Shown here: positions 1-56,509 of the stretch, in pieces | Numbering within the stretch: the stretch's first letter is position 1 | How the letters are laid out: each line of letters opens with the position of its first letter | Source: Sminthopsis crassicaudata | Lineage: Eukaryota | Direction: 5' to 3' | NCBI RefSeq assembly: GCF_048593235.1 | Contig: NC_133622.1 | Span: 183,954,001 to 184,018,000, forward strand | DNA length: 64,000 bases | Position numbers and translations under genes: made by a program | Notes under the pieces: generated by a model | The model's database searches: none | What the model saw: only the letters and a program-made list of their open reading frames with translations | Told to the model about the DNA's origin: nothing

Positions 1-281
1 ATTTACTGGAATAGACACTGTGTATCTGACACTGTCTTGGGCATCAGAAGGTGGTTTCTGGTTTTTAAAACATTTTCAATCTAATTGTGATGAATAGGAC
101 CAAATAAATGCACAAGAAGAAAAATAAAAGAGTTAAATAAGAAAGCAAGAAACGTCTTGGAGTAGCAAGCAGCTAGTTTGTGAAATAGTATGGATGGAAA
201 CTGTTGTGAATCCAGAAGAGAAAGCGCTCCGACTAGATCATCTAGGAAGACTGCATGGAAGAAATCAGGCTTGAAATGATA

Positions 282-434
282 TTTGTTTTTTGTTGTTTTA
301 CAAAGTAATTGGAGTTAAGTGACTTGCCCAGGGTCACACAGCCAGGAAATGTTAAGTGTCTGAGGCCATATTTGAACTCTGGTCCTCCTGACTTCAGGGC
401 TGGTGCTCTGTCCTCTGCTTCTTCTAGCTGCCTC
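282..434 (-). mobile_element. CORE-SINE (WSINE1/Mar1-type), moderately diverged
   Basis: Reverse complement reads as a tRNA-derived head (gaggcagctagaag...gagcaccagccctgaagtcaggaggaccagagttcaaat) plus CORE (ctgtgtgaccctgggcaagtcacttaa) and an A-rich tail. Confidence 0.85.
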
Positions 435-1064
435 AGAATAGTTCTATTTTGACTCAAATTAATTTTAAGAGAGTTCAGAGAGTAAGGCATTGAAGGAGGC
501 CTTGAAGCCAGGAAGGCCTAATTTTTGATCCCACCTCTGACCCATAAAGTGCATACGATCCTGGGAAAATCACTGAAACTCTTAGAAATCTGCACAACTG
601 AGAGTCGTGTGTGTGTTTGTGTGTATGTGTGTGTCTTTGCTTCAATACCTTACTCTCTGAACTCTCTTAAAATTAATTCTTTGGGGGGGGTGGGGATAGA
701 AATTAATAGATGGGGAATCAAGGTGTCCCTATAAATTCTGCCATTCTTAGAACAATCTCTGCAGTCCCTCAGCTCCAGGGCAAGCCTGCTGACCTTTGAA
801 ATAACATGCTTGGGCTTTGTGATAAGAGGAAGGTCACAATAGAGAAGTTCTGGGACTTTCCCTATGCTGGGAGGGGCTGGAAAGCGGTAACCAATAACAA
901 TGCCTTAATTACCAATGCAAACTGACTGGTTTTTCATAATGAGGGCTGGCCCAGAAAAAAAAAAAAAAAAAAAAAAAAAGTTGTAGTGTCTTCCTGGCCA
1001 GAAATCCTTGGTGCCTCCTGAAGAAGACCCAGGTAATTGTGCTTTCTGTCACATTTTTTTTTTG

Positions 1065-1066
<2 letters not shown>

Positions 1067-1107
<41 letters not shown>
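1067..1107. repeat. (TG)n microsatellite
   Basis: Uninterrupted GT dinucleotide run. Confidence 0.95.
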
Positions 1108-1112
<5 letters not shown>

Positions 1113-1663
1113 CCCTTCTTGCTTGAAAAGTGAAGAGAGGTATATATATTTATATGTATTTCTCTGCCCAGGCCTCTTTCCTGTTGGCTGTTTCCAACAA
1201 CTAAGCTTTCCTGTTTTTGCTTTCGAGCCCTAGGTTTGGCTATTGGAACTAAGCCTATTTATTTGGAGTATAGAGGCCCAAAGTTTGGCCCTGGCATTTT
1301 GCACAGTTTGGGCAAACAGAAGGATTTCTGAACCTGGGATGTCTTGGAAGGTTTTCTCCAGGGCTGGGGAAGACGGGGGAGCTTGGGAACAGTAACTCCG
1401 TCATTCCTTCAAAGCCGCAAGAGGAAGGAAATTTAGTAACGTAGAAAGAACAGTGATCTTGGACTCAGATGATAAGTTATATAGCCTTAACTCTGATTCC
1501 TGCAATTTGTGTGACTTTGGATAAATCACTTTCCTTCCCAGGTTTCTGTATAATTAGGGGGTTGGAATAGATGATAGCTCTAAGAGACTCTTCTGCTATG
1601 GTATTTGTGGGTTGGTATGGTGAAAAGAGCTGTGACTTCCAGAGTCAGATAATGTGACTTTTT

Positions 1664-2999
1664 ATTTTATTTTATTTTTCTGGTTATATATGTGGATTCA
1701 TTTTTAAAAATATACATTTTATGAATCATGCTGGGAGAGAAAAATCAGAACAAAAGGGAAAAACCAGGAGAGGAAAAAAAAAAAAAAAACAGAAGAAAGA
1801 AGGGGGAAAAGTGAATATAATATATGTTGATTGACATCCAATCTCCATAGGTCTCTCTCTGGATGCAGATGGCATTTTCCATCCAAAGTTTGAGATTTCC
1901 TTGAATCACTCACTGAACTGCTGAGAAGAACCAAGTCTTTCATAGTTTGTTATCAAGCAAATTTGCTGTTACGTGTACAATGTATTCTTAGTGCTGCTTG
2001 TTTCACTCAGCATCACTTCATGCAAATCTTTCCGAGCCTTTTTGAAAATCCGTTCATTCATTTTTTTAATAGAACAATAATATTCCATTACTTTTATATT
2101 ACCATAACTTATTCAGCCCTTCCCCAATTGATGGACATCTTCTCATTTTCCAATTCTTTGCTACCATTAAAAGAGCTGTTACAAACATTTTTGCACATAT
2201 AGGTCCTTTTCCCTCCTTTATCATTTCATTGGGAAACAAACCCAGTAATGAGACTGCTGATCAAAGGGTCTTCACAGTTTGATCACCCTTTGGGTATAAT
2301 TCCAAATTGCTCTCCAGAATGGTTGGATCATTTCACAACTCCACTAACAATGTATTAGCGTCCTAGATTTCCCACATTCTTCCCAACACATATCATCTTT
2401 TCTGTCATTTTAGCCAATTTGAGAGATGTGAGGTGGTACTTCAGAGTTGTTTTAATTTGCATTTCTCTAAACAATAGTAATTCAGAGCATTTTTTCATAT
2501 GACTATAGATGGCTTTAATTTTATCATCTGAAAATTGTCATTGAGCATTTTTCAATTGGGAAATTATTTGTATTCTTATAGATTTGACATAGTTCTTTAT
2601 ATATTTCAAAAATGAATACTTTATCAGAAAACTAGGCTGTAAATTGTTTTTCCCCAGCTTTGTACTTTCTTTTAATCTTCTTTGTGTTAGTTTTGTTTGT
2701 GCAAAATTTTTTTCACTTAATGTAATCAAAATTGCCCATTTTATATTTCATAATTTTCTGTAGTTCTTCTTTGGTCATAAATTCCTACCCTTTCCAAAGA
2801 TCTGCTAATTAAACTATCCCTTGCTCTCCTAAACAGCTTATGGTATCGCCCTTTATGCCCCAAATCATGTACCAATTTTAACCTTATTTTGGTATGGGAT
2901 ATGAGATATAGGTCTATGCTGAGTTTTTGACATTATTTTCCAGTTTTCCTAGCAATTTTTGTGAAATAGTGAGTTCTTATTTCAGAAACTGGAGTTTAA
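1664..2999 (-). mobile_element. Older 5'-truncated LINE-1 (3' UTR plus degraded ORF2 C-terminus)
   Basis: T-rich tail at the left; colinear with the younger L1 at 46749-48528 (gccaatttgagagatgtgaggtggtacttcagagttgttttaatttgcatttctc); many stops; ORF 2538-2729 resembles degraded ORF2 text. Confidence 0.9.
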
Positions 3000-5554
3000 G
3001 GGCTAATAAAAGGGAGGCTGGAATTGGGGGAGAGGGATAGAAAAAAGAAATTGGGGAAAGGCAAAGGTGAAAAAAATGGAAGTTGTTGAAGAAAAATTCG
3101 GTCTACTACACATTTTTACTGAGAATCCACCCTAATTCTTACATTGCTCTTTTTCATCATTTTCTAAATTACATAAGCCATGTTTGAGACAGTCTTCTGA
3201 GCAAAGGAAATGTAGAGATCTACATGCTTCCATGGAATGATGATTCAGTGTAAAGGAAGAGGCAAGAATTATGATCAGTGTGACTTGGTTTCCTTGTGTA
3301 CCTGTGATGTGGGGAGGAACTGGGTCTGGGGACTCCTAATTCTTCAAATATGAGTAGACAAGCTTTCCTTGTTTGCAAGACTGAGTTAAAACATTTGTGA
3401 AGCATTTGAATGGAGGGACTATGATACTCTGGCTTATCAGACACGAAAAGTCTAAGGATAGCCTGGAAGTACGATTTAGTGAAGCCATCCATGGTTTAGA
3501 TTAGGTGACCTGTGACATCCCTTCCAGCCCTACCATTCTATATGGGTTTGATTATATGAAGCTACCAAGAGACAACATGGTGCAATGGAAAGAAAATAAC
3601 TCAAAATCTTAAAAAAAAAAAAAAGTCTGCAGTCAGACTTTCTTGACTCTGGGAATTTGGACAAATGATTCCCTTCCCCCCCCCCTTTTTTTTTTGCCTC
3701 TGTCTATATCCTACAAAAGGAAATAATGATACTTTACAATTTTGTCATGAAAAAAGCATTTTGTAGATCTCAAAAGTGTTTTATATATATGGATATTAAG
3801 ATATCCATATGTATGCAAATATATTTATGCATATATAGTGCAAATATTTTGAAACAAATGTACAATATCATATATAAATATATGCAATGATGAATTATAT
3901 ATTTCTTTGTGCATAAGGTATAGGAACAGGAACTGGATGGGGTGACATAGATGGTAGAGTTTTGAATTTGTTGTCTGGAAGACGAGTTCAAATCTCATTT
4001 TAGACAGTTTACTTCTTTGAGCCTCAAGTTTTTTCATTTATTAAATTGAGAGAGCTGTCCATGATGATGTCTAAGGCTCTTTCCAGCTCTAAATCTATGA
4101 TTGACTGATCTGTGGTATAACTGATATGGGGAGTTCCCAGATGAGCAAGCTTACTCTACTAAAGCAGACTGGCACCTTCTCTGTATGTAGCTTATAGTCT
4201 TAGAGAGTTGTCCAGAATACAGAAAAGTTAATTGACTTGCCCATGTTCACACAGTGCCAGGGTTTGAAATCTGTTGTTTCTAGCTTCAAGATGGGCTATC
4301 TGTGTTGTGTATTCCAGCTATAGTCAGACAAATTTCTCGTTTCCCTTCAACAAAATGCATTTTATTCATATCCACCAGAAAGACCAAAATGAATATAATT
4401 CCTTCTAACATACAGCAAAGGGTGATTACAAAAGTTTGCTTGAAACTTTTGGAATTTGCTTGGGCAAAAGAACAATGATAATGAATGAGAAGAAATACAT
4501 CCGTGGGGAGGGGGAAATGTGGATAGGATGCATAAGGAGAGAATGGATATAACTTATCCATGCTGATATGTCATAGAATTTTACAACTGGAAAGATGTTT
4601 AGGAAAGGGAAAAATGGCATCTCACATTTATGTGGAACCCAAGAGTTTAAAAAGTCAATTCTGCAGTTGGAAGGGAACTTAGAACTGAGAAAGTTTGTGG
4701 TGAAAAGTCTTTTAGAAAATAACATTTTAAAAGAAATCTTCACTGAAGGAGCTGTACAGATTACTTTTTTTTTTTTTCCTATTCCCAAAGAATAAAAAAT
4801 GCCACTGGGTATTGATAAGCCTCTCTTCCTCATTTAAAAAAACACACACACTTTAGATATGAAGCCTTCATCTAAAAATAGGAGGTAGGTTGGATCCTGG
4901 TTTTGAATCTATCGCCAGAAGGAGGGACTTTGTCTTGACAAACTGTATTGGTTGCTATAAATAATTCTCTTTGTGTCTACTTCCTTTTACCTCTGTCTTG
5001 TACAGAACCAGACCTGCTCATTTGGGGAGGTACAGTTGTTGAAACTTGGGGTGAGGTTTTGCCTGCTCTGAGCCATTATTATCTGAATTGATCTCAGAAT
5101 TAACCAAGAGGTGTCATTTGGCACCATGCTAATTGGGTGAGTTTTTTTTTTTTCCCCTTCTTTTAAATGTTGGCTATAACATATTTTACATATAGATAAA
5201 AACAATGAATTTTGAATCAAGAATATCTAGGTTTGAGTCTCCACTGTAATATTTATTATCTATGCAAAATTAAAGCAATTCACTTTTATCCCTTTAAGCC
5301 TTAGTTTTCCTATCTGGGGGTAATACTGTTTGTAAAACTTATTGGCCAAGAGAGGATAGGAAGAAGTCATTGTAAATATGGATTTATATTATAAAATAAG
5401 AATTGTAATTCTTTGGGGAGTTATTCCAAAAATCTTCATGCAGTTTTAAGTTACTAAAATTTCAATACCTTAAAATTATATTCAGACTTTCAGGACACCC
5501 ATAAGATACTAAACTAATAAAACTTAAAACTATTTTTACTAACCATAAAGTCAC

Positions 5555-14460: not shown

Positions 14461-15056
14461 CAAAGTTTCTTCTAGTTAGACCAAGAAAGGGAGAATTTGA
14501 ACCCTAGTCTGATGGCTCCTGTATTCTTTCTGATAAACTCACTACAGTAATATAGCAGCAAAACTCAGCCTAGAATCTGGTTCTTTCCTAGCTTTCCTAT
14601 TCCTCTATTTCACTAAGCCTGAATCATCTCCCTTGTTTAAAATACAGTGCAAATACCAGACTTATTCATTTGCTGTGTAAAGGGAGACAAGGCATTTCAC
14701 CTCTGTGAGATTTTTTTTTCCCCCCTGTCTCCTGAGGGGGGTGGAATTTTATTATCTCCAATGTCTTTTCCAGTTCTAACATTCTATGTTGTAAATGTGT
14801 CAAAAGAGCTGGATGGGAGCATTATGGTAAGCCTGGGTATTTGCACAAAGTAGTTGTGCTGTTAGACTAGACAGCTGTAGTTCTCTGTTGATTCCTGGAA
14901 TATATGAGACAGTGCAGATAACACTAATGTCTCAGATCTGACTTTCCTGTGAAGGGAATAGAAGTACTTAGATTTCTTTCATCTCCCAATAGCCTTAGTG
15001 ACTAAGGTTCTGTGCCAAGGGGGTGACCTGATGGTGTCCACATCAGAAAGCAATGG

Positions 15057-15658
15057 TATAAGGATGCGGTTCCCGCAAAACAAGAGAAGGGAATTGTAAG
15101 GGCCCTTTAAATGGGCGGCACCACAGTGCAACAGGAGATTTGAGTGGCCTAGAAGTATTCTCTGTGGATATAGGACTGCCCTGTGGGTGGGATCCTGTCC
15201 ATATTGAGATAGCATCGTAATGGGTGACAGCTCTTTCTCTGGTTGGCTGTGTGTGTGACCTCACAGGCCCTTTATAAGTCCACTGCAGACAGCAGTTGCT
15301 CTCTTTAACCTGGCTCCCTAGCCTGGGGTAGCCAACCCAAGCCAAGCTGATGGATAGCCGAGAAGTAAGGAGTTTGGTAGAGAACACGTGGGTCTTCAGA
15401 CCAGGTGTTCACTAGGGAACTGACAAGTCAGGACATTATGTGAGTGGTTATAATAAAGGCTTTTAAGATTACACATGGCTGTTCTTGAGCGTGCTACTGG
15501 TTATTAAACTATAGATTCAAGAGATCGTGGCCAGAGACCGAGAAGGCCTCAGAGGAGGCGAGCCGGGTAGAGTTGACACTGCAAAGATCAGTGGTCAAAG
15601 GTGCTCTGTTGGGCCTACGTCAGACTAGTAATTGTAACTGTCAGGAGGGCATGTTACA
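15057..15658 (+). mobile_element. ERV2-type LTR (15095-15658, TG...CA) with retained PPT/internal stub; same family as 51720-55567
   Basis: Colinear with the reverse complement of the 51720-52295 LTR (roughly 85% by eye); TATA 15271-15278, splice donor GAA|GTAAGG at 15365, AATAAA 15452-15457; TSD caatgg at 15051-15056 and 15659-15664. Confidence 0.92.
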
Positions 15659-16691
15659 CAATGGAGTGGGAAATGTGATGGACTTGTAGTCAGTGTGCCC
15701 ACAGAGCCTGGGTAAAAGTCTTCAGTTTCTCTCACCTATAAAATGGGGAGGATAATCCTTTGAATCTTGAGTCACTTATTTTATCCTTGTAAGTAAATCA
15801 GTTACTACTAGTAACAATTATTGACCAACTGCAACCAATGAGTAAGTTAAGCCCAAGAGCCCAGACTACCCTAGTTATTACTCTAGGAAGCAATCTTTAT
15901 GGACATATGACTTGGCAAATGCTTCTGCCCATGTTGCTGTCATGGCTACTGATGACTCAGAAAAGAAATTTCTTGCACCAAAATCCTTGGTGCTGTCAAA
16001 TGCTATAATATCAGAAACTGATATGATGTTATTAACAGAAATGACATTAAAGCAGAGGGATTATCATCTGCTTTACTTCTGTCCCTTAACAATCAATGGA
16101 TTTTTGTCAGTGGAACTTTTCATAGACATTGTCTTCTGAATAGAATGTGAGTGGCTTGGAAGCAAGGACTGCCTTTTAGAATTTATATTCTTGGATCTTA
16201 GCATGGTGTTTTGCACAAAGTAAGCACTTAAGTGCTTTTTAAAAATCATTCATTTCTTCTTTACAGTAGAAATATAAACAAATACAAGTCAATTTGAGGA
16301 GATAAAGGTAGTTGAGGAGAAGTTGTATGAAGAAAAAAGTGGTACTTCAGCTATATCTTGAAGGGAAAAAGGCCTCATATCAAGGCAAATCAGAGTAGAA
16401 AATGTATTCCAGTTACTGGACCACTATTACAAAGGTAAGGAGATAGGATCTAGTGTGTGCTGTGTGAAGAAGAAAAATCAATTTAAATTTCCACTCATAG
16501 AATGGAGGAGTAGGAATAATTTTCAATGAGGCAGGAAAGAAAGATTTGAGCCCAGTTATATAAAGACTTTATAAATTAAACAAAATATTTTCCTATAGGT
16601 CATAGGGAACCAAAGTAATTGTTGAGTAGAGGGAATCACAAGGTCACAAATTTAGTTAAACATAATCACTTTGGCAGCAGTGTACAGTATT

Positions 16692-51090: not shown

Positions 51091-51719
51091 AAATACTATT
51101 GTTTATCAAACAGCACACCAATAAAAAAAGTATTTTTTGGAAAATACTATACTTTGATCCACATTCAATCTTCACAGTTCTCTCTTTGGATGTAAGTGGC
51201 ACTTTCCATCCCAAGTCTATTATAATTGGCCTGAATCACTTCATTGTTGGAAAGAGCCACATCCATCACAATTGATCATGGAATAATCTTGTTGTTGCTG
51301 TGTATAATGTTCTGTTGTTTCTGCTCACTTCACTTAGCATCAGTTCATGTAAGAACCATCCTGCTGATCGTTTCTTATACAACAATAATATTCCATAACA
51401 TTTATATATCATAACTTATTCAGCCATTCTCCAACTGATGAGCATTCACTCATGTCCGAGTTCCTTCCTACTACAAAAAGGCTGTTACAAATATTTTGGC
51501 ACAAAATTTTCCCTTTTTTACAATCTCTTGGGGATACAGGCACTGTTTGATCAAAGAGAATAATACACAGTTTAATAGCCTTTTGGGCATAGTTCCAGAT
51601 TGCTCCCCAGAATGGCTGGGTCAATTCACAACTCTACCAACAATGTATCAGTGTCCCAACATTCCCTCCAACAATTATCATTATCTTTTCCTGTCTTTTT
51701 ATCTAATCTGAGAAGTATG

Positions 51720-52295
51720 TGTAACGTGCTCTCCTGGCAGTTACAATTACTAGTCTGTCCTAGACCCACCAGAGTACCTTTGACCACTGTCCTTTGCAGT
51801 GTGAGCTCTACCCGGCTCGCCTCCTCTGAGGCCTTCTAAGGTCTCTGGCCACAATCTCTTGAATCTATAGCTTAATAACCGGTAGCGCACTCAAGAACAA
51901 CCACGTGTAATCTTAAAAGCCTTTATTATACCTACTCACATAATGCCCTAGCTGATGCCCTGACTTGTTGGTTCCTGAGTGAACACCTGGTCAGAAGACC
52001 CATGTGTTCACTACCAAAATCCTTACCTCTTTCGGCTACCCATCTTGGCTTGGCCACCCAGGCTAGGAGCCAGGGTGAATAGCACGAGGTTAAAGAGGGC
52101 GGTTGCTGCCTGCAGTGGGCTTATATAGGGCCTGTGAGGTCACACACACAGCCAATCAGCGAGAGAGTCACCCATTACAAAACTATCTCAATATGGCCAG
52201 GATCCCGCCCAAGGGCAGTCCTAATATCCACAGAAATTACTTCTGGGCCTCAATCTCCCGATGCACTGTGTCCGCTCATTTAAAGGGCCCTTACA
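51720..52295 (-). repeat. 3' LTR
   Basis: Matches 54992-55567 except 52080 T/55352 C and 52274 G/55546 A (by eye). Confidence 0.98.
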
Positions 52296-52313
52296 ATTCC
52301 CTTTCTCTTGTTT
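52296..52313 (-). other. Polypurine tract
   Basis: - strand AAACAAGAGAAAGGGAAT immediately before the 3' LTR TGTAAGG. Confidence 0.9.
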
Positions 52314-52422
52314 TGCGGGAACCGCACATCTCACCAAGCTAAACTTTTAGCACCAGCTATAGTTCACTTGATCCATGAGATGACAATGTTATGCCCAAGG
52401 AGGTACAAAGCAGCAGATCAGT

Positions 52423-52467
52423 AAACAGAAGTATGACAATGAGAACCAGGCTCAACAGTGGCCCAAA
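52423..52467 (-). pseudogene. env membrane-spanning-domain remnant
   Basis: - strand FGPLLSLVLIVILLF resembles the gamma-type env GPL(hydrophobic)n helix and lies just upstream of the PPT; flanked by stops/frameshifts. Confidence 0.5.
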
Positions 52468-52681
52468 TGTTCAACCCATTCATCAAAGTCATACTCGAGA
52501 TAATAGGCCAAAGAGATTGGATGCCAATGAGGTAGGATGTCAACACTGAGGTGGGAAGTCAACAAGGTAAAACATCACAATTCTAGTTAACAAATATCAG
52601 TAGGTAGGTTGTCACAATTCTAGTTACATTTATCACAGTTCTAGACCAATTCTAGTTTCTTACAATTTTCTGTTGCACTTT

Positions 52682-52955
52682 TCACACTCCTAGAACAATT
52701 CTAGCTTATCACAATTCTCAATTGCACTTGTCACAATCCTAGAACAATTCTAGTTTATCACAATTCTCAATTGCACTTGTCACAATCCTAGAACAATTCT
52801 AGCTTATCACAATTCTCAATTGCACTTGTCACAATCCTAGAACAATTCTAGCTTATCACAATTCTCAATTGCACTTTTCACAATTCTAGAGCAATTCTAG
52901 CTTATCACAATTCTCTATTGCACTTTTCACAATTCTAGAACAATTCTAGTTTCAC
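52682..52955. repeat. 49-bp tandem array (5 full units + partial; decayed units back to ~52596)
   Basis: tagaacaattctag core at 52691, 52740, 52789, 52838, 52887 and 52936 (exact 49-bp period). Confidence 0.97.
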
Positions 52956-53309
52956 AGGTGCACATAAGCAGTCATGTCCAGTAACATTGTCTCAATAACA
53001 ATGGCAGGTGGGTGTGTTGGTTTTTCACCCACTAATTTAAAAGCATAGTCCTTCAATAGAAAGCATAGGGCAAAGCCTCTTCCCAGGCCACCATATGGCA
53101 AGTGGCCACGGGAGAAGCAAGCAGGCCCATTGTCCATTTACAGTCTTTATATTGCGTATCACCCAAAACAGTCCATTTCAGCTGCAACACTGGAACTGTG
53201 TCTGCTGTCTCTGGTGTCACGGTCAGGAGGGGCATCGCTGCCATCAGCGTCTGAAGGGCTGCGGACATCTGGCTGGTCTCTCTGGACTGTTGTCTGGTCC
53301 TTCTCTTGG

Positions 53310-53432
53310 ATCCCCAAGTTACAAATGTCTCTGGTGGGGATCAACTCTGCTGCTGGATCTGCACCTAGGAAGGAATGTCCCCGGGGCCCAACTTGGGCCT
53401 TTCCAAATGCCATCCAGGCCTTTCCACATCAC
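53310..53432 (-). pseudogene. Betaretroviral integrase C-terminal domain remnant (frameshifted)
   Basis: - strand VMWKGLDGIWKGP, then in another frame RGHSFLGADPAAELIPTRDI; resembles recalled V.WKD...WKGP...WGRG..CV...W.P.R motif. Confidence 0.65.
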
Positions 53433-53548
53433 AGTGGAAACAAAGTTGTTGTCAAAAAAGATTAACAAGTCAGACAAAAGTCAGTCTGTCACTTAGCTGC
53501 ACTTTCTGTGTATGCCTGAAGTGCATTGCTAAGGTAAAATGCAAAGAA

Positions 53549-53680
53549 TTTAAAAATGTAAAACCAAAATAATTTAAAAGTGTAAAACCAAAATAACTTT
53601 AAAATGTAAAATCAAAATACTTTGAAGATGTAAAACCAAAAATGTTTAAAAATGTAAAATCAAAATTTAAAATTGTAAGC
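53549..53680. repeat. 24-bp tandem array (U-rich on the element's sense strand)
   Basis: tgtaaaa at 53557, 53581, 53605, 53629 and 53653 (exact 24-bp period). Confidence 0.95.
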
Positions 53681-53842
53681 AATCACATATCCCAAAATTC
53701 CCTTCTCTTGTTTAGAAGAGAAGATCTTGGGGATAGTCTGTGCAGTAATGACTTTACTAACACTCGGCTATATCCCTGAATTCTTTTGCCTAAAAATCAA
53801 AGTTTGAGTTTCTGATACCGAATTGTACTCCAGGAGTGTGAA

Positions 53843-54868
53843 TCAATAAATCTGATATTTTCCTCCTGGGTCAAAGATCACACACTGTCTATTTATTCTA
53901 GTGATTAAAACAGCAATTTTCCAACCCATTCTAGACATAAACACTGTTTTATAAGTACCCGTAGGGGGTTGGGAAATCAAGCTCACCTGTGGAAGTGGAA
54001 AATCCACGAGGTAAGAAAAGAGGAGTTTCAACTCTCCAAAGACGATCCTAGCAGTTTTACAAGTATAAAACTCCACTCTCTCTAACTGCAAGGTCTTGTC
54101 CCTGTAAGGTTTCTTAGAAATTAACTGAACTGTATTTTTAAAACTTTTCTGATTATAGTCAATACCCCACAATTCCTTTTTGCCTTGGGGCATAAAGCCT
54201 ACTCCTGTCCTTTGAAATGAAGACACAGGAGTTTTAAATGGATTAATGGGCAGTGCTGATGATATTATCGCCCTTCCTTTTCCTCCTCCCCCTTCTCCCT
54301 TGGCCCAAGAAGGTGAGGCAGAGGGAAGAAGAATTGGAAAATTCCCCAAAGGCTGATTTAAAATCAAACCTGAGCTTTGCACATAAAAAGAACTAAACTT
54401 CTTCTCAATGAAAGAGTAATCAATAAATTCCTTAAAACAACAATGCACGAGGTAAACCAACAAAACGCTAAGAAGAATTTCTACAACTGAAATCCATGTG
54501 GTTCGTTTATTTCCTTCCTTAGTTTCAGCCACTGGTTTGAACTCTTCCTGTTCTATCTGTAGTAACCTAGCTTTTTCTTCTTTCTCTAGCTCAATCTGTA
54601 GTTTAACCTGCAATTCCAGCAACTCTTGCTGTGGCATTTTGTACTCTATACTGTCATACATACGCACTAGCTCTAGGTTGCTCCCTCTCCGAGCTATATT
54701 TAATGGGTGTGGGGATAGCCTTCTCGGAGCTTGATTACAAGCTTCCTGCTGTTCTTCAGTGGTGATCTTTGTTAAAAGATCTTCCATCTGGCTCTTTAAC
54801 CTCTTTATATAATAAGCATTATGTTCAGCTGTGTCCTTGAGTCTGATCCCAGATTTACCTGGGTCCAT
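53843..54868 (-). CDS. 341-aa ORF of unknown family in the gag position: coiled coil (aa ~80-110), TM helix (aa ~125-145) followed by Cys-Cys, unknown C-terminal domain
   Basis: Longest uninterrupted ORF in the window; strong Kozak (gcaatATGG) about 100 nt after the PBS; no MG start, MHR or CCHC knuckle. Confidence 0.7.
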   Translation of the reverse strand: MDPGKSGIRLKDTAEHNAYYIKRLKSQMEDLLTKITTEEQQEACNQAPRRLSPHPLNIARRGSNLELVRMYDSIEYKMPQQELLELQVKLQIELEKEEKARLLQIEQEEFKPVAETKEGNKRTTWISVVEILLSVLLVYLVHCCFKEFIDYSFIEKKFSSFYVQSSGLILNQPLGNFPILLPSASPSWAKGEGGGGKGRAIISSALPINPFKTPVSSFQRTGVGFMPQGKKELWGIDYNQKSFKNTVQLISKKPYRDKTLQLERVEFYTCKTARIVFGELKLLFSYLVDFPLPQVSLISQPPTGTYKTVFMSRMGWKIAVLITRINRQCVIFDPGGKYQIY

Positions 54869-54971
54869 ATTGCTTCTCTGTCTTCCCTCTTAAGTGGCGT
54901 TTCTACCGGATCTTTCAGAATCTTAATTCTGAATATTAAATATTTTCAAAACCTGATAATTTCTGATGCGT

Positions 54972-54989
54972 CCACCACGTTGGGCGCCA
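54972..54989 (-). other. Primer binding site, tRNA-Lys1,2 (CUU)
   Basis: TGGCGCCCAACGTGGTGG 2 nt downstream of the 5' LTR; first 15 nt match the canonical Lys1,2 PBS TGGCGCCCAACGTGGGGC. Confidence 0.92.
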
Positions 54990-54991
54990 TT

Positions 54992-55567
54992 TGTAACGTG
55001 CTCTCCTGGCAGTTACAATTACTAGTCTGTCCTAGACCCACCAGAGTACCTTTGACCACTGTCCTTTGCAGTGTGAGCTCTACCCGGCTCGCCTCCTCTG
55101 AGGCCTTCTAAGGTCTCTGGCCACAATCTCTTGAATCTATAGCTTAATAACCGGTAGCGCACTCAAGAACAACCACGTGTAATCTTAAAAGCCTTTATTA
55201 TACCTACTCACATAATGCCCTAGCTGATGCCCTGACTTGTTGGTTCCTGAGTGAACACCTGGTCAGAAGACCCATGTGTTCACTACCAAAATCCTTACCT
55301 CTTTCGGCTACCCATCTTGGCTTGGCCACCCAGGCTAGGAGCCAGGGTGAACAGCACGAGGTTAAAGAGGGCGGTTGCTGCCTGCAGTGGGCTTATATAG
55401 GGCCTGTGAGGTCACACACACAGCCAATCAGCGAGAGAGTCACCCATTACAAAACTATCTCAATATGGCCAGGATCCCGCCCAAGGGCAGTCCTAATATC
55501 CACAGAAATTACTTCTGGGCCTCAATCTCCCGATGCACTGTGTCCACTCATTTAAAGGGCCCTTACA
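54992..55567 (-). promoter_or_regulatory. 5' LTR with CCAAT box, TATA box, internal splice donor and poly(A) signal
   Basis: On -: ATTGG 55424-55428, TATATAA 55393-55399, GAG|GTAAGG donor (GT 55297-55298), AATAAA 55194-55199. Confidence 0.93.
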
Positions 55568-56509
55568 AGTATGAATTGCTATCTCAGAGTTGTTGAATTT
55601 GCATTTCTCTAATCAATAGTGATTTAGAATATTTTTTCATATGACTAAAAATGGTTTCAATTTCTTTATCTGAAAATCATATCCTTTGACCACTTATCAA
55701 TTGGGGAATGGCTTTTATTCTTATAAATTTACCTCAGTTCTCTATGTATTTTAGAAATGAGTTCTTTATCAGAAACATTGAAGGTAATTTTTTCTTTCAG
55801 CTTTCTGCTTTCCTTCTAATCTTGACTACATTGATTTTGTTTGTACAAAAATTTTTAAATTTAGCATGATCAAAACTATCCATTTTGCATTTCATAATGT
55901 TCTCTAGTTATTCTTTGGCTATAAATCCATTTTCACCAATTTGAGAAGCAGACTATCTTTTATTCTTCTGATTAGCTTATAATATCACCCTTTATGTCTA
56001 AATCATGAATCCATTTTGATCTTATCTTGGCATAAGGTGCTAGGTGTTGGTTAATGCCTAGTTTCTGCCATGCTATCTTCCAGTTTCCCCAGCAATTGTT
56101 GCCATATAGTGAGTTCTTATGCCAGAGACTGGAGTCACATACGTTCTTAATAAATACTGGCATTAATTTGTCATTTGTTCACTGAATATGCAGAGAAATA
56201 GCATCCCAGCATCCACTTGTATGCTTCCAGCAATAAGGAACCTACTACTTATCAAAGCTAACTCTTTCTGGCTTGGATTAGCTTCAGTGATTAGGAAGTT
56301 TCTCTAAAATCTATTTCCCTTGCTGCTCTGAGAGTTTGTGAACTCTGAAATTCTTTGATGCTCTGTACAAAAACAGAAAGACTTCAAACACAGGACAAAG
56401 TGAATTTGATAAGGTAATTGATGTTGGGAGAATCTCAAGCTCCTTTCAGTCAATTGAAAGCAGCTAGTTTGAACATATTATAAACTATGGTGCTAAAAGG
56501 ATAATAATT

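Follow-up and report, generated by a model that had tools for sequence, protein, structure and literature searches.

What occupies positions 51720-55567 on the minus strand of the 64,000-nucleotide stretch of fat-tailed dunnart DNA (Sminthopsis crassicaudata, contig NC_133622.1, positions 183,954,001 to 184,018,000; hereafter the window), how could it have spread, and does its single long open reading frame (ORF), here called ORF341, encode a working protein? Our analysis indicates that this retrovirus-like element is, in all likelihood, one copy of a family of non-autonomous long terminal repeat (LTR) retroelements with the hallmarks of class II (betaretrovirus-like) endogenous retroviruses (ERVs). 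Judged from the literature, the family is probably undescribed so far, and repeat catalogues could still list it; no description of a dasyurid element of such kind was found in the literature searched.

The limits of the window copy were set by base-by-base extension of a direct repeat with a start-to-start spacing of 3272, and all of its parts are given here on the minus strand. Indeed, two LTRs of 576 bp, each with TG...CA ends, were delimited at 54992-55567 (5' LTR) and 51720-52295 (3' LTR, supported by repeat extension and LTR-pair alignment); they are identical at 574/576 positions (2 mismatches and 0 gaps) and are enclosed by a perfect 6-bp target-site duplication, CATACT, read directly at 55568-55573 before the 5' LTR and again at 51714-51719 after the 3' LTR. 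These values are exactly those reported in the first-pass annotation of this DNA. A TATA-like box at 55393-55399 (LTR position 169) and an AATAAA signal at 55194-55199 (LTR position 369) suggest a division of the LTR into U3 (~195 nt), R (~195 nt) and U5 (~185 nt). An 18-nt primer-binding site (PBS) of the tRNA-Lys1,2 type (54972-54989) starts two bases after the 5' LTR, and an 18-nt polypurine tract (52297-52314) ends one base before the 3' LTR. When scored against the PBS-Lys1,2 strings printed in PMC8775094 and PMC1084362, the PBS agrees at 16/18 positions, with its first 15 nt perfect, as compared with 11/18 for Lys3; note that neither the window nor the eight other loci described below contain tRNA genes usable for a direct test of the PBS. 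The locus thus displays what is expected of an LTR retroelement or provirus, namely direct LTRs with TG...CA ends, a short duplication, a PBS and a polypurine tract, and the same LTR and 6-bp duplication features were found for seven further bounded insertions.

These further insertions were reached by searching ORF341 against 5.8 billion clustered proteins, which returned one match, a 90% cluster of eight distinct proteins, all of them named 'uncharacterized protein LOC...' of S. crassicaudata. The eight loci lie on five chromosomes of GCA_048593235.1 and hold nine more copies, giving ten interiors with the window copy; at every one of them the LTR-ORF-arrays-LTR layout was recovered, with 94.5-97.5% identity to the window copy. 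It should be noticed that copies reached through annotated proteins form a sample biased towards open frames and against frameshifts. The element is multi-copy, and the eight bounded insertions (the seven and the window copy) each have their own perfect 6-bp duplication, all eight of them different, while all or part of the 5' LTR is missing in two further copies. A Lys1,2-type PBS is kept in 10/10 copies (14-16/18 positions), and the polypurine tract is identical in 10/10. The LTR pairs of the seven further bounded insertions display 0, 0, 0, 1, 1, 1 and 12 mismatches, so that the description of the element as very young holds well, with 0-2 mismatches in all but one bounded copy. Divergence between copies reaches 2-5% overall (1.6-3.7% by region), and the window copy falls within the diversity of the dunnart copies. 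Near-identical LTR pairs combined with 2-5% divergence between copies therefore point to several diverged lineages that replicated until very recently. If 2-3e-9 changes per site and year are assumed as a generic rate for mammals, the 2/576 LTR differences would place the insertion of the window copy at under about 1 million years. The most discordant LTR pair, at locus L002 (5305-5877 and 8713-9286), has 11 of its 12 mismatches in the R-U5 half and a perfect duplication, a pattern suggestive of recombination with a different copy, or of conversion by it, once the element had inserted. In addition, a segment of ~223 bp just after the ORF is found in three copies only (L004 7099-7342, L006 7100-7345 and L008 7099-7341); it defines a subfamily and matches nothing else in the available data.

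Could these loci instead be a host gene family spread by segmental duplication, in which the 'LTRs' are mere flanking repeats? The NCBI annotation of the copies as paralogous 'uncharacterized protein' genes and the presence of two copies in tandem at one locus would fit such an origin. However, a different perfect 6-bp duplication lies around each bounded copy exactly at the TG...CA ends, similarity between copies ends at the LTR ends, and the PBS and polypurine tract stand at their canonical places. Moreover, the tandem pair has a common middle LTR and one duplication around the whole unit, as an exchange between LTRs gives, and we therefore consider this explanation refuted. At that locus (L001, 1858-9323) the order is LTR-interior-LTR-interior-LTR with a shared middle LTR, a single GGGACC duplication and two identical ORFs, an arrangement that is probably due to unequal exchange between LTRs.

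We then consider the interior of the element, in which no replication gene was detected. Among all stop-to-stop pieces of at least 40 aa on both strands of the interior, no Pfam family of reverse transcriptase, protease, integrase, Gag or Env was found at E<=1. The 'IN stub', 'env stub' and 'env TM stub' named in the first-pass annotation accordingly have no Pfam family at this threshold, and PDB sequence searches with three of the pieces so called gave no match. The best integrase likeness, at E ~2, comes from a G+C-richer middle region (52957-53533) with no significant family match, which includes a 53-aa open piece (53322-53480); against PDB this piece gives chance-level matches, among them the same ~15 residues to two integrase C-terminal-domain chains of mouse mammary tumour virus (MMTV), with E of 2 and 2.4. 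Over 7 residues a match was also seen to an integrase DNA-binding domain from an unrelated dunnart ERV (E 0.057 in a single comparison); it points in the same direction and is likewise not significant. The stubs are therefore unconfirmed: an integrase remnant in the middle region is possible at most, and the env remnants find no support. Matches of the 53-aa piece to Toxin B repeats (E 0.004, 22 residues) were put down to chance resemblance between short repeats, and open frames on the antisense strand of the middle region look like effects of composition. The element is thus non-autonomous in the sense of the first-pass annotation, with no pol, pro or gag domain detected, and it combines the lack of reverse transcriptase, protease and integrase with multiple recent insertions of the integrase type.

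The cis-acting equipment, in contrast to these genes, is that of a full provirus and comprises the TATA box and poly(A) signal of the LTRs, the PBS with a structured U5-leader around it, and the polypurine tract. The leader between PBS and ORF (54869-54971) contains a hairpin with an 8-bp stem and has 2.0% divergence among copies, and the U5-PBS-leader folds better than shuffled sequences (z -3.67), which makes leader and U5 the best candidate for a packaging or dimerisation region. At the other end, a conserved region (52315-52604) lies upstream of the polypurine tract, and divergence over 52296-52604, tract included, is 1.8% among copies; the region itself has neither a special fold (z -0.88) nor a protein match. 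Divergence is lowest in the leader, in the stretch directly behind the ORF and in the region next to the polypurine tract, as expected for cis-acting parts; this pattern and the fold of the U5-PBS-leader would both suit a role in packaging and priming.

How, then, could the family spread? Integrase-type insertions without an integrase gene suggest that the proteins are supplied in trans. RNA of the element would be transcribed from the 5' LTR and packaged by proteins of an autonomous ERV active in the same germ line; reverse transcription would then be primed by tRNA-Lys and followed by integration, again with proteins supplied in trans. Precedents for mobilisation in trans include ETn/MusD, VL30 and IAP I-delta-1 (PMC6466679). 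The helper may belong to the env-less, IAP-like MEBrv 3 clade or to another Lys-primed betaretrovirus-like clade of dasyurids; MEBrv 3, a class II clade with identical LTR pairs that is reported to be active in the fat-tailed dunnart (Harding et al. 2024, PMC11334065), is the obvious candidate. The one systematic survey of dasyurid ERVs retained an ERV only if it carried gag, pol or env, and solo LTRs were estimated there by subtraction (PMC11334065); such a screen would have missed the present family.

The interior also bears on a different origin, namely that the element is a recombinant which owes its LTRs and terminal cis-acting parts to a single ERV lineage and its interior to an unrelated retroelement or host transcript, with ORF341 as a passenger, in the manner of recKoRV/PhER. 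We judge this unlikely, even if no likeness of the interior to retroviral proteins was detected and a marsupial example of recombination with older retroelements is on record (PMC6112702). Part of the case comes from an older, near-wholly deleted relative on the plus strand of the window (15057-15658), made of 38 nt of polypurine-tract-proximal sequence and a 564-nt LTR with 82% identity to that of the element, with CAATGG on both sides (15051-15056 and 15659-15664). Its first bases resemble the start of an LTR, so that it looks like the product of an internal deletion that was nearly total and not like a classic solo LTR. This relative shares with the young element only the LTR and 31 nt of tract-proximal sequence, as a recombinant origin would have it; however, being internally deleted, it is uninformative on its own former interior. 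In addition, the searches revealed neither a donor sequence nor any host or viral protein resembling ORF341, and the weak integrase-like trace, if real, would favour the simple decay of an ancestral provirus. The first-pass view that gag-pro-pol had been 'replaced' by an unrelated membrane-protein gene is likewise conjecture, with no donor gene found among 1.84 billion representative proteins.

The start of ORF341 itself (341 codons, 53843-54868) lies 124 nt beyond the 5' LTR. At 40% G+C, chance does not produce a frame of 341 codons, and a real coding origin is for this reason very likely. Two N-terminal helices and one strongly hydrophobic span, a predicted transmembrane helix (residues ~123-146, Kyte-Doolittle 2.34), are indicated, so that the product would be a single-pass membrane protein with a helical N-terminal part and a poorly ordered C-terminal half. 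An AlphaFold2 model built from a 9-sequence alignment gave no confident fold and was too poor for use (mean predicted local distance difference test score 34.6, predicted template modelling score 0.17). There is no Pfam or PDB match for ORF341. A profile of nine ORF sequences searched against the 1.84 billion representative proteins recovered its own cluster only, beyond one spurious repeat protein (P0009, an SRCR/zona-pellucida protein whose score adds up over repeats and whose BLASTP E is 1.2); a search with the N-terminal 150 residues found no shorter annotated relatives, and no relatives were found in IMG/VR or JGI metagenome contigs. By length the ORFs form two classes (341 aa and 358-360 aa) whose C-terminal tails are unrelated.

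Two retroviral identities were tried for this protein and rejected. A Gag would be expected to show matrix, capsid or nucleocapsid domains and zinc knuckles, whereas ORF341 has no Gag family match (E<=1), no PDB relative and no CCHC, major-homology-region-like or late-domain motif. The superantigen (Sag) of MMTV is a U3-encoded, glycosylated type II membrane protein, whereas ORF341 stands in the position of gag rather than in U3, has no N-glycosylation sequon and matches no viral Pfam family above chance; the sole likeness between the two is the single predicted membrane span. As further observations on the frame, two near-consensus splice-donor-like sites lie inside ORF341 on the minus strand, at 54859-54867 (right after the third codon) and at 53987-53995 (in the last fifth), and a 6-codon upstream ORF with a strong start context is present in the presumed R region. 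The NCBI gene models at loci L005 and L008 each contain a splice that leaves the ORF, and the model at L005 runs on into flanking DNA.

Is ORF341, then, a gene or a drifting frame? The first-pass annotation had credited the element with its own non-gag gene, and what stands of this is an orphan frame open in 9/10 copies. The one broken copy carries two frame-shifting indels and no stop codon made by substitution. Among ~80 substitution events, 0 real stops were seen as compared with 2-5 stop-making changes expected (P 0.01-0.12), and indels amount to 3.9 events per kb in the ORF vs ~14-17 elsewhere in the element, with no clear depletion when in-frame indels alone are considered. In contrast, variant events are spread over codon positions 1, 2 and 3 as 27:27:25, without third-position excess, and the divergence of the ORF equals or exceeds that of the non-coding parts of the element. 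Pairwise ratios of nonsynonymous to synonymous change (dN/dS, NG86) have a median of 0.61, and the substitutions look almost neutral. With a mutation spectrum that depends on context and was derived from non-coding parts of the element itself, an omega-like ratio of 0.86 was obtained (p 0.30); other spectra gave 0.58-0.72, with p of 0.018-0.30 over all spectra, and the N-terminal 120 codons gave 0.39-0.57. The amino-acid sequence of ORF341 would thus be at most weakly constrained, and its status as a working gene at present is unproven. ORF341 would most likely derive from a coding region of the family ancestor and now drift almost neutrally, staying open mainly through the youth of the family, perhaps with weak selection for an open 5'-proximal frame.

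It is possible, but in our opinion doubtful, that ORF341 is instead a working element-encoded protein kept by selection on the replicating lineages, either as a membrane-anchored factor acting in cis on its own RNA or on particle assembly, or as a protein that interacts with the host; the latter would evolve fast under mixed purifying and diversifying selection. Frames open in nine of ten copies across lineages 2-5% apart, without real stops and with a fourfold deficit of indels, speak for such a protein, as do the lower omega-like ratio of its N-terminal part, a start codon in good context, the modelling of the loci as protein-coding by NCBI, and the precedent of IAP I-delta-1 with its cis-acting novel ORF (PMC6466679). 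However, the three codon positions are equally variable, the overall omega-like ratio of 0.58-0.86 is not significant under the element's own mutation spectrum, and divergence is not below that of non-coding parts. Moreover, the protein lacks both a homologue and a confident fold, the leader holds four ATGs upstream of its start, the two length classes end in unrelated tails, and the sample itself favours open frames. A stronger version, in which a satellite ERV is active now and its lineage-specific membrane-protein ORF is selected for its own spread at the expense of the helper, or for manipulation of the host, seems to us improbable.

Three points weigh against our reading of the locus as a class II-like family that is moved in trans and carries a merely drifting ORF. 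First, the assignment as class II-like relies on the letters of the PBS and on duplication length, without pol for a tree. A 6-bp duplication and a Lys-type PBS, both present here as the first-pass annotation had stated, are typical of class II ERVs and not exclusive to them, and foamy viruses likewise use Lys1,2. Second, mobilisation in trans is inferred from the lack of detectable replication genes and from clear signs of integrase-type insertion, with no helper provirus identified. Third, the openness of ORF341 in 9/10 copies, its freedom from stops and its roughly fourfold indel deficit speak against mere drift, and all three are weakened by the annotation-based sampling.

Two tandem arrays, located with Tandem Repeats Finder, complete the interior, and together with the Lys1,2 PBS, the polypurine tract and ORF341 they are all present as first noted. 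The 24-nt array (53534-53666, 5.5 units) is U-rich on the sense strand and shows two 24-nt copy-number changes among copies, whereas the 49-nt array (52605-52956, 7.2 units) has two short palindromes per unit and, depending on the copy, 3 to 9 units. Of the 'structured RNA arrays' proposed earlier, the 49-nt array does fold better than shuffled sequences (z -3.95), and no structure is predicted for the 24-nt array (z +0.95). The 49-nt units are nearly identical, so covariation between them is uninformative. No Rfam family matches the arrays at E<0.85 or comes near a gathering score. An export or packaging element of the CTE, RTE or MTE kind was therefore not retained, since the 49-nt array shows generic excess folding and a variable unit number, and a role of the arrays as an aid to RNA export or packaging would be a guess.

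Several other features were noted in the window and around the further copies. In the window, two overlapping open pieces of 248 and 268 aa at 47108-48576 (minus strand) resemble the C-terminal part of LINE-1 ORF2 and represent an ordinary repeat, with no Pfam match for the pieces; GM-CSF was rejected as the identity of 43485-43862, for which the Pfam match is sub-threshold and without PDB support. At L005, fragments of pol from an older ERV, which cover the integrase core and the integrase DNA-binding domain (3410-4199, plus strand), lie ~1.1 kb upstream of the element copy, and this fragment was discarded as a relative of the element since no significant DNA or translated similarity links them. 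At L006, a 919-aa open frame (1620-4376, plus strand) adjoins the copy; its sole domain is RVT_1 and it is probably a young LINE ORF2. At L008, a gene with a match to the interferon-gamma family (1-3912, plus strand) is followed ~2 kb downstream by the element copy.

Altogether, a family with 0-2 mismatches between paired LTRs is likely to give rise to insertional polymorphism and to new mutations in the dunnart, an emerging laboratory model. At least nine dunnart loci annotated as 'uncharacterized protein' are copies of the element, which bears on gene counts and orthology, and ERV activity in dasyurids is under-counted, since surveys limited to gag, pol and env miss such families. If ORF341 were functional, it would mean that a helper-dependent ERV is able to carry and keep its own gene, unlike ETn and VL30. 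If the satellite version were true, the element would represent a new strategy for a helper-dependent retroelement in mammals, and a small gene family annotated as 'uncharacterized protein' in the dunnart would have arisen from it.

Among known systems, the closest is ETn/MusD of the mouse (class II, ERV-beta7), with which the dunnart element shares the order LTR-PBS-interior-polypurine tract-LTR without replication genes, the class II hallmarks and many young insertions. Reliance on proteins made elsewhere has been shown for ETn (PMC6466679), whereas we infer it for the dunnart element. ETn has no coding capacity, in contrast to the open frame of 341-360 codons in the dunnart family; the progenitor of ETn, MusD, is known, whereas the helper of the dunnart family is only a candidate; and the dunnart host is a marsupial. 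As another mouse example, IAP I-delta-1 is, like the dunnart element, a non-autonomous class II-type element with one long ORF (PMC6466679). It is partly deleted, its novel gag-pol fusion ORF acts in cis, and it out-competes full-length relatives (PMC6466679). It may, by analogy, serve as a model for an ORF that helps its own RNA; however, its ORF is recognisably gag-pol, whereas ORF341 matches no gag or pol family and shows no clear constraint.

VL30 of the mouse and recKoRV/PhER of the koala belong to class I (gammaretrovirus-type) and make 4-bp duplications, unlike the dunnart element with its Lys PBS and 6-bp duplication, and VL30 has no long ORF, which sets it further apart. They are likewise defective LTR elements carried by a competent retrovirus (PMC6466679, PMC6112702), and with recKoRV such carriage is happening now in a marsupial (PMC6112702). 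Finally, compared by description only, MEBrv 3 resembles the dunnart element in being of class II type, env-less and recently active, with identical or near-identical LTR pairs (PMC11334065). It differs in size and content, since MEBrv 3 is 7.3 kb long with gag-pro-pol and a 469-nt LTR (PMC11334065), whereas the dunnart element measures 3.8 kb, has a 576-nt LTR and carries no such genes.

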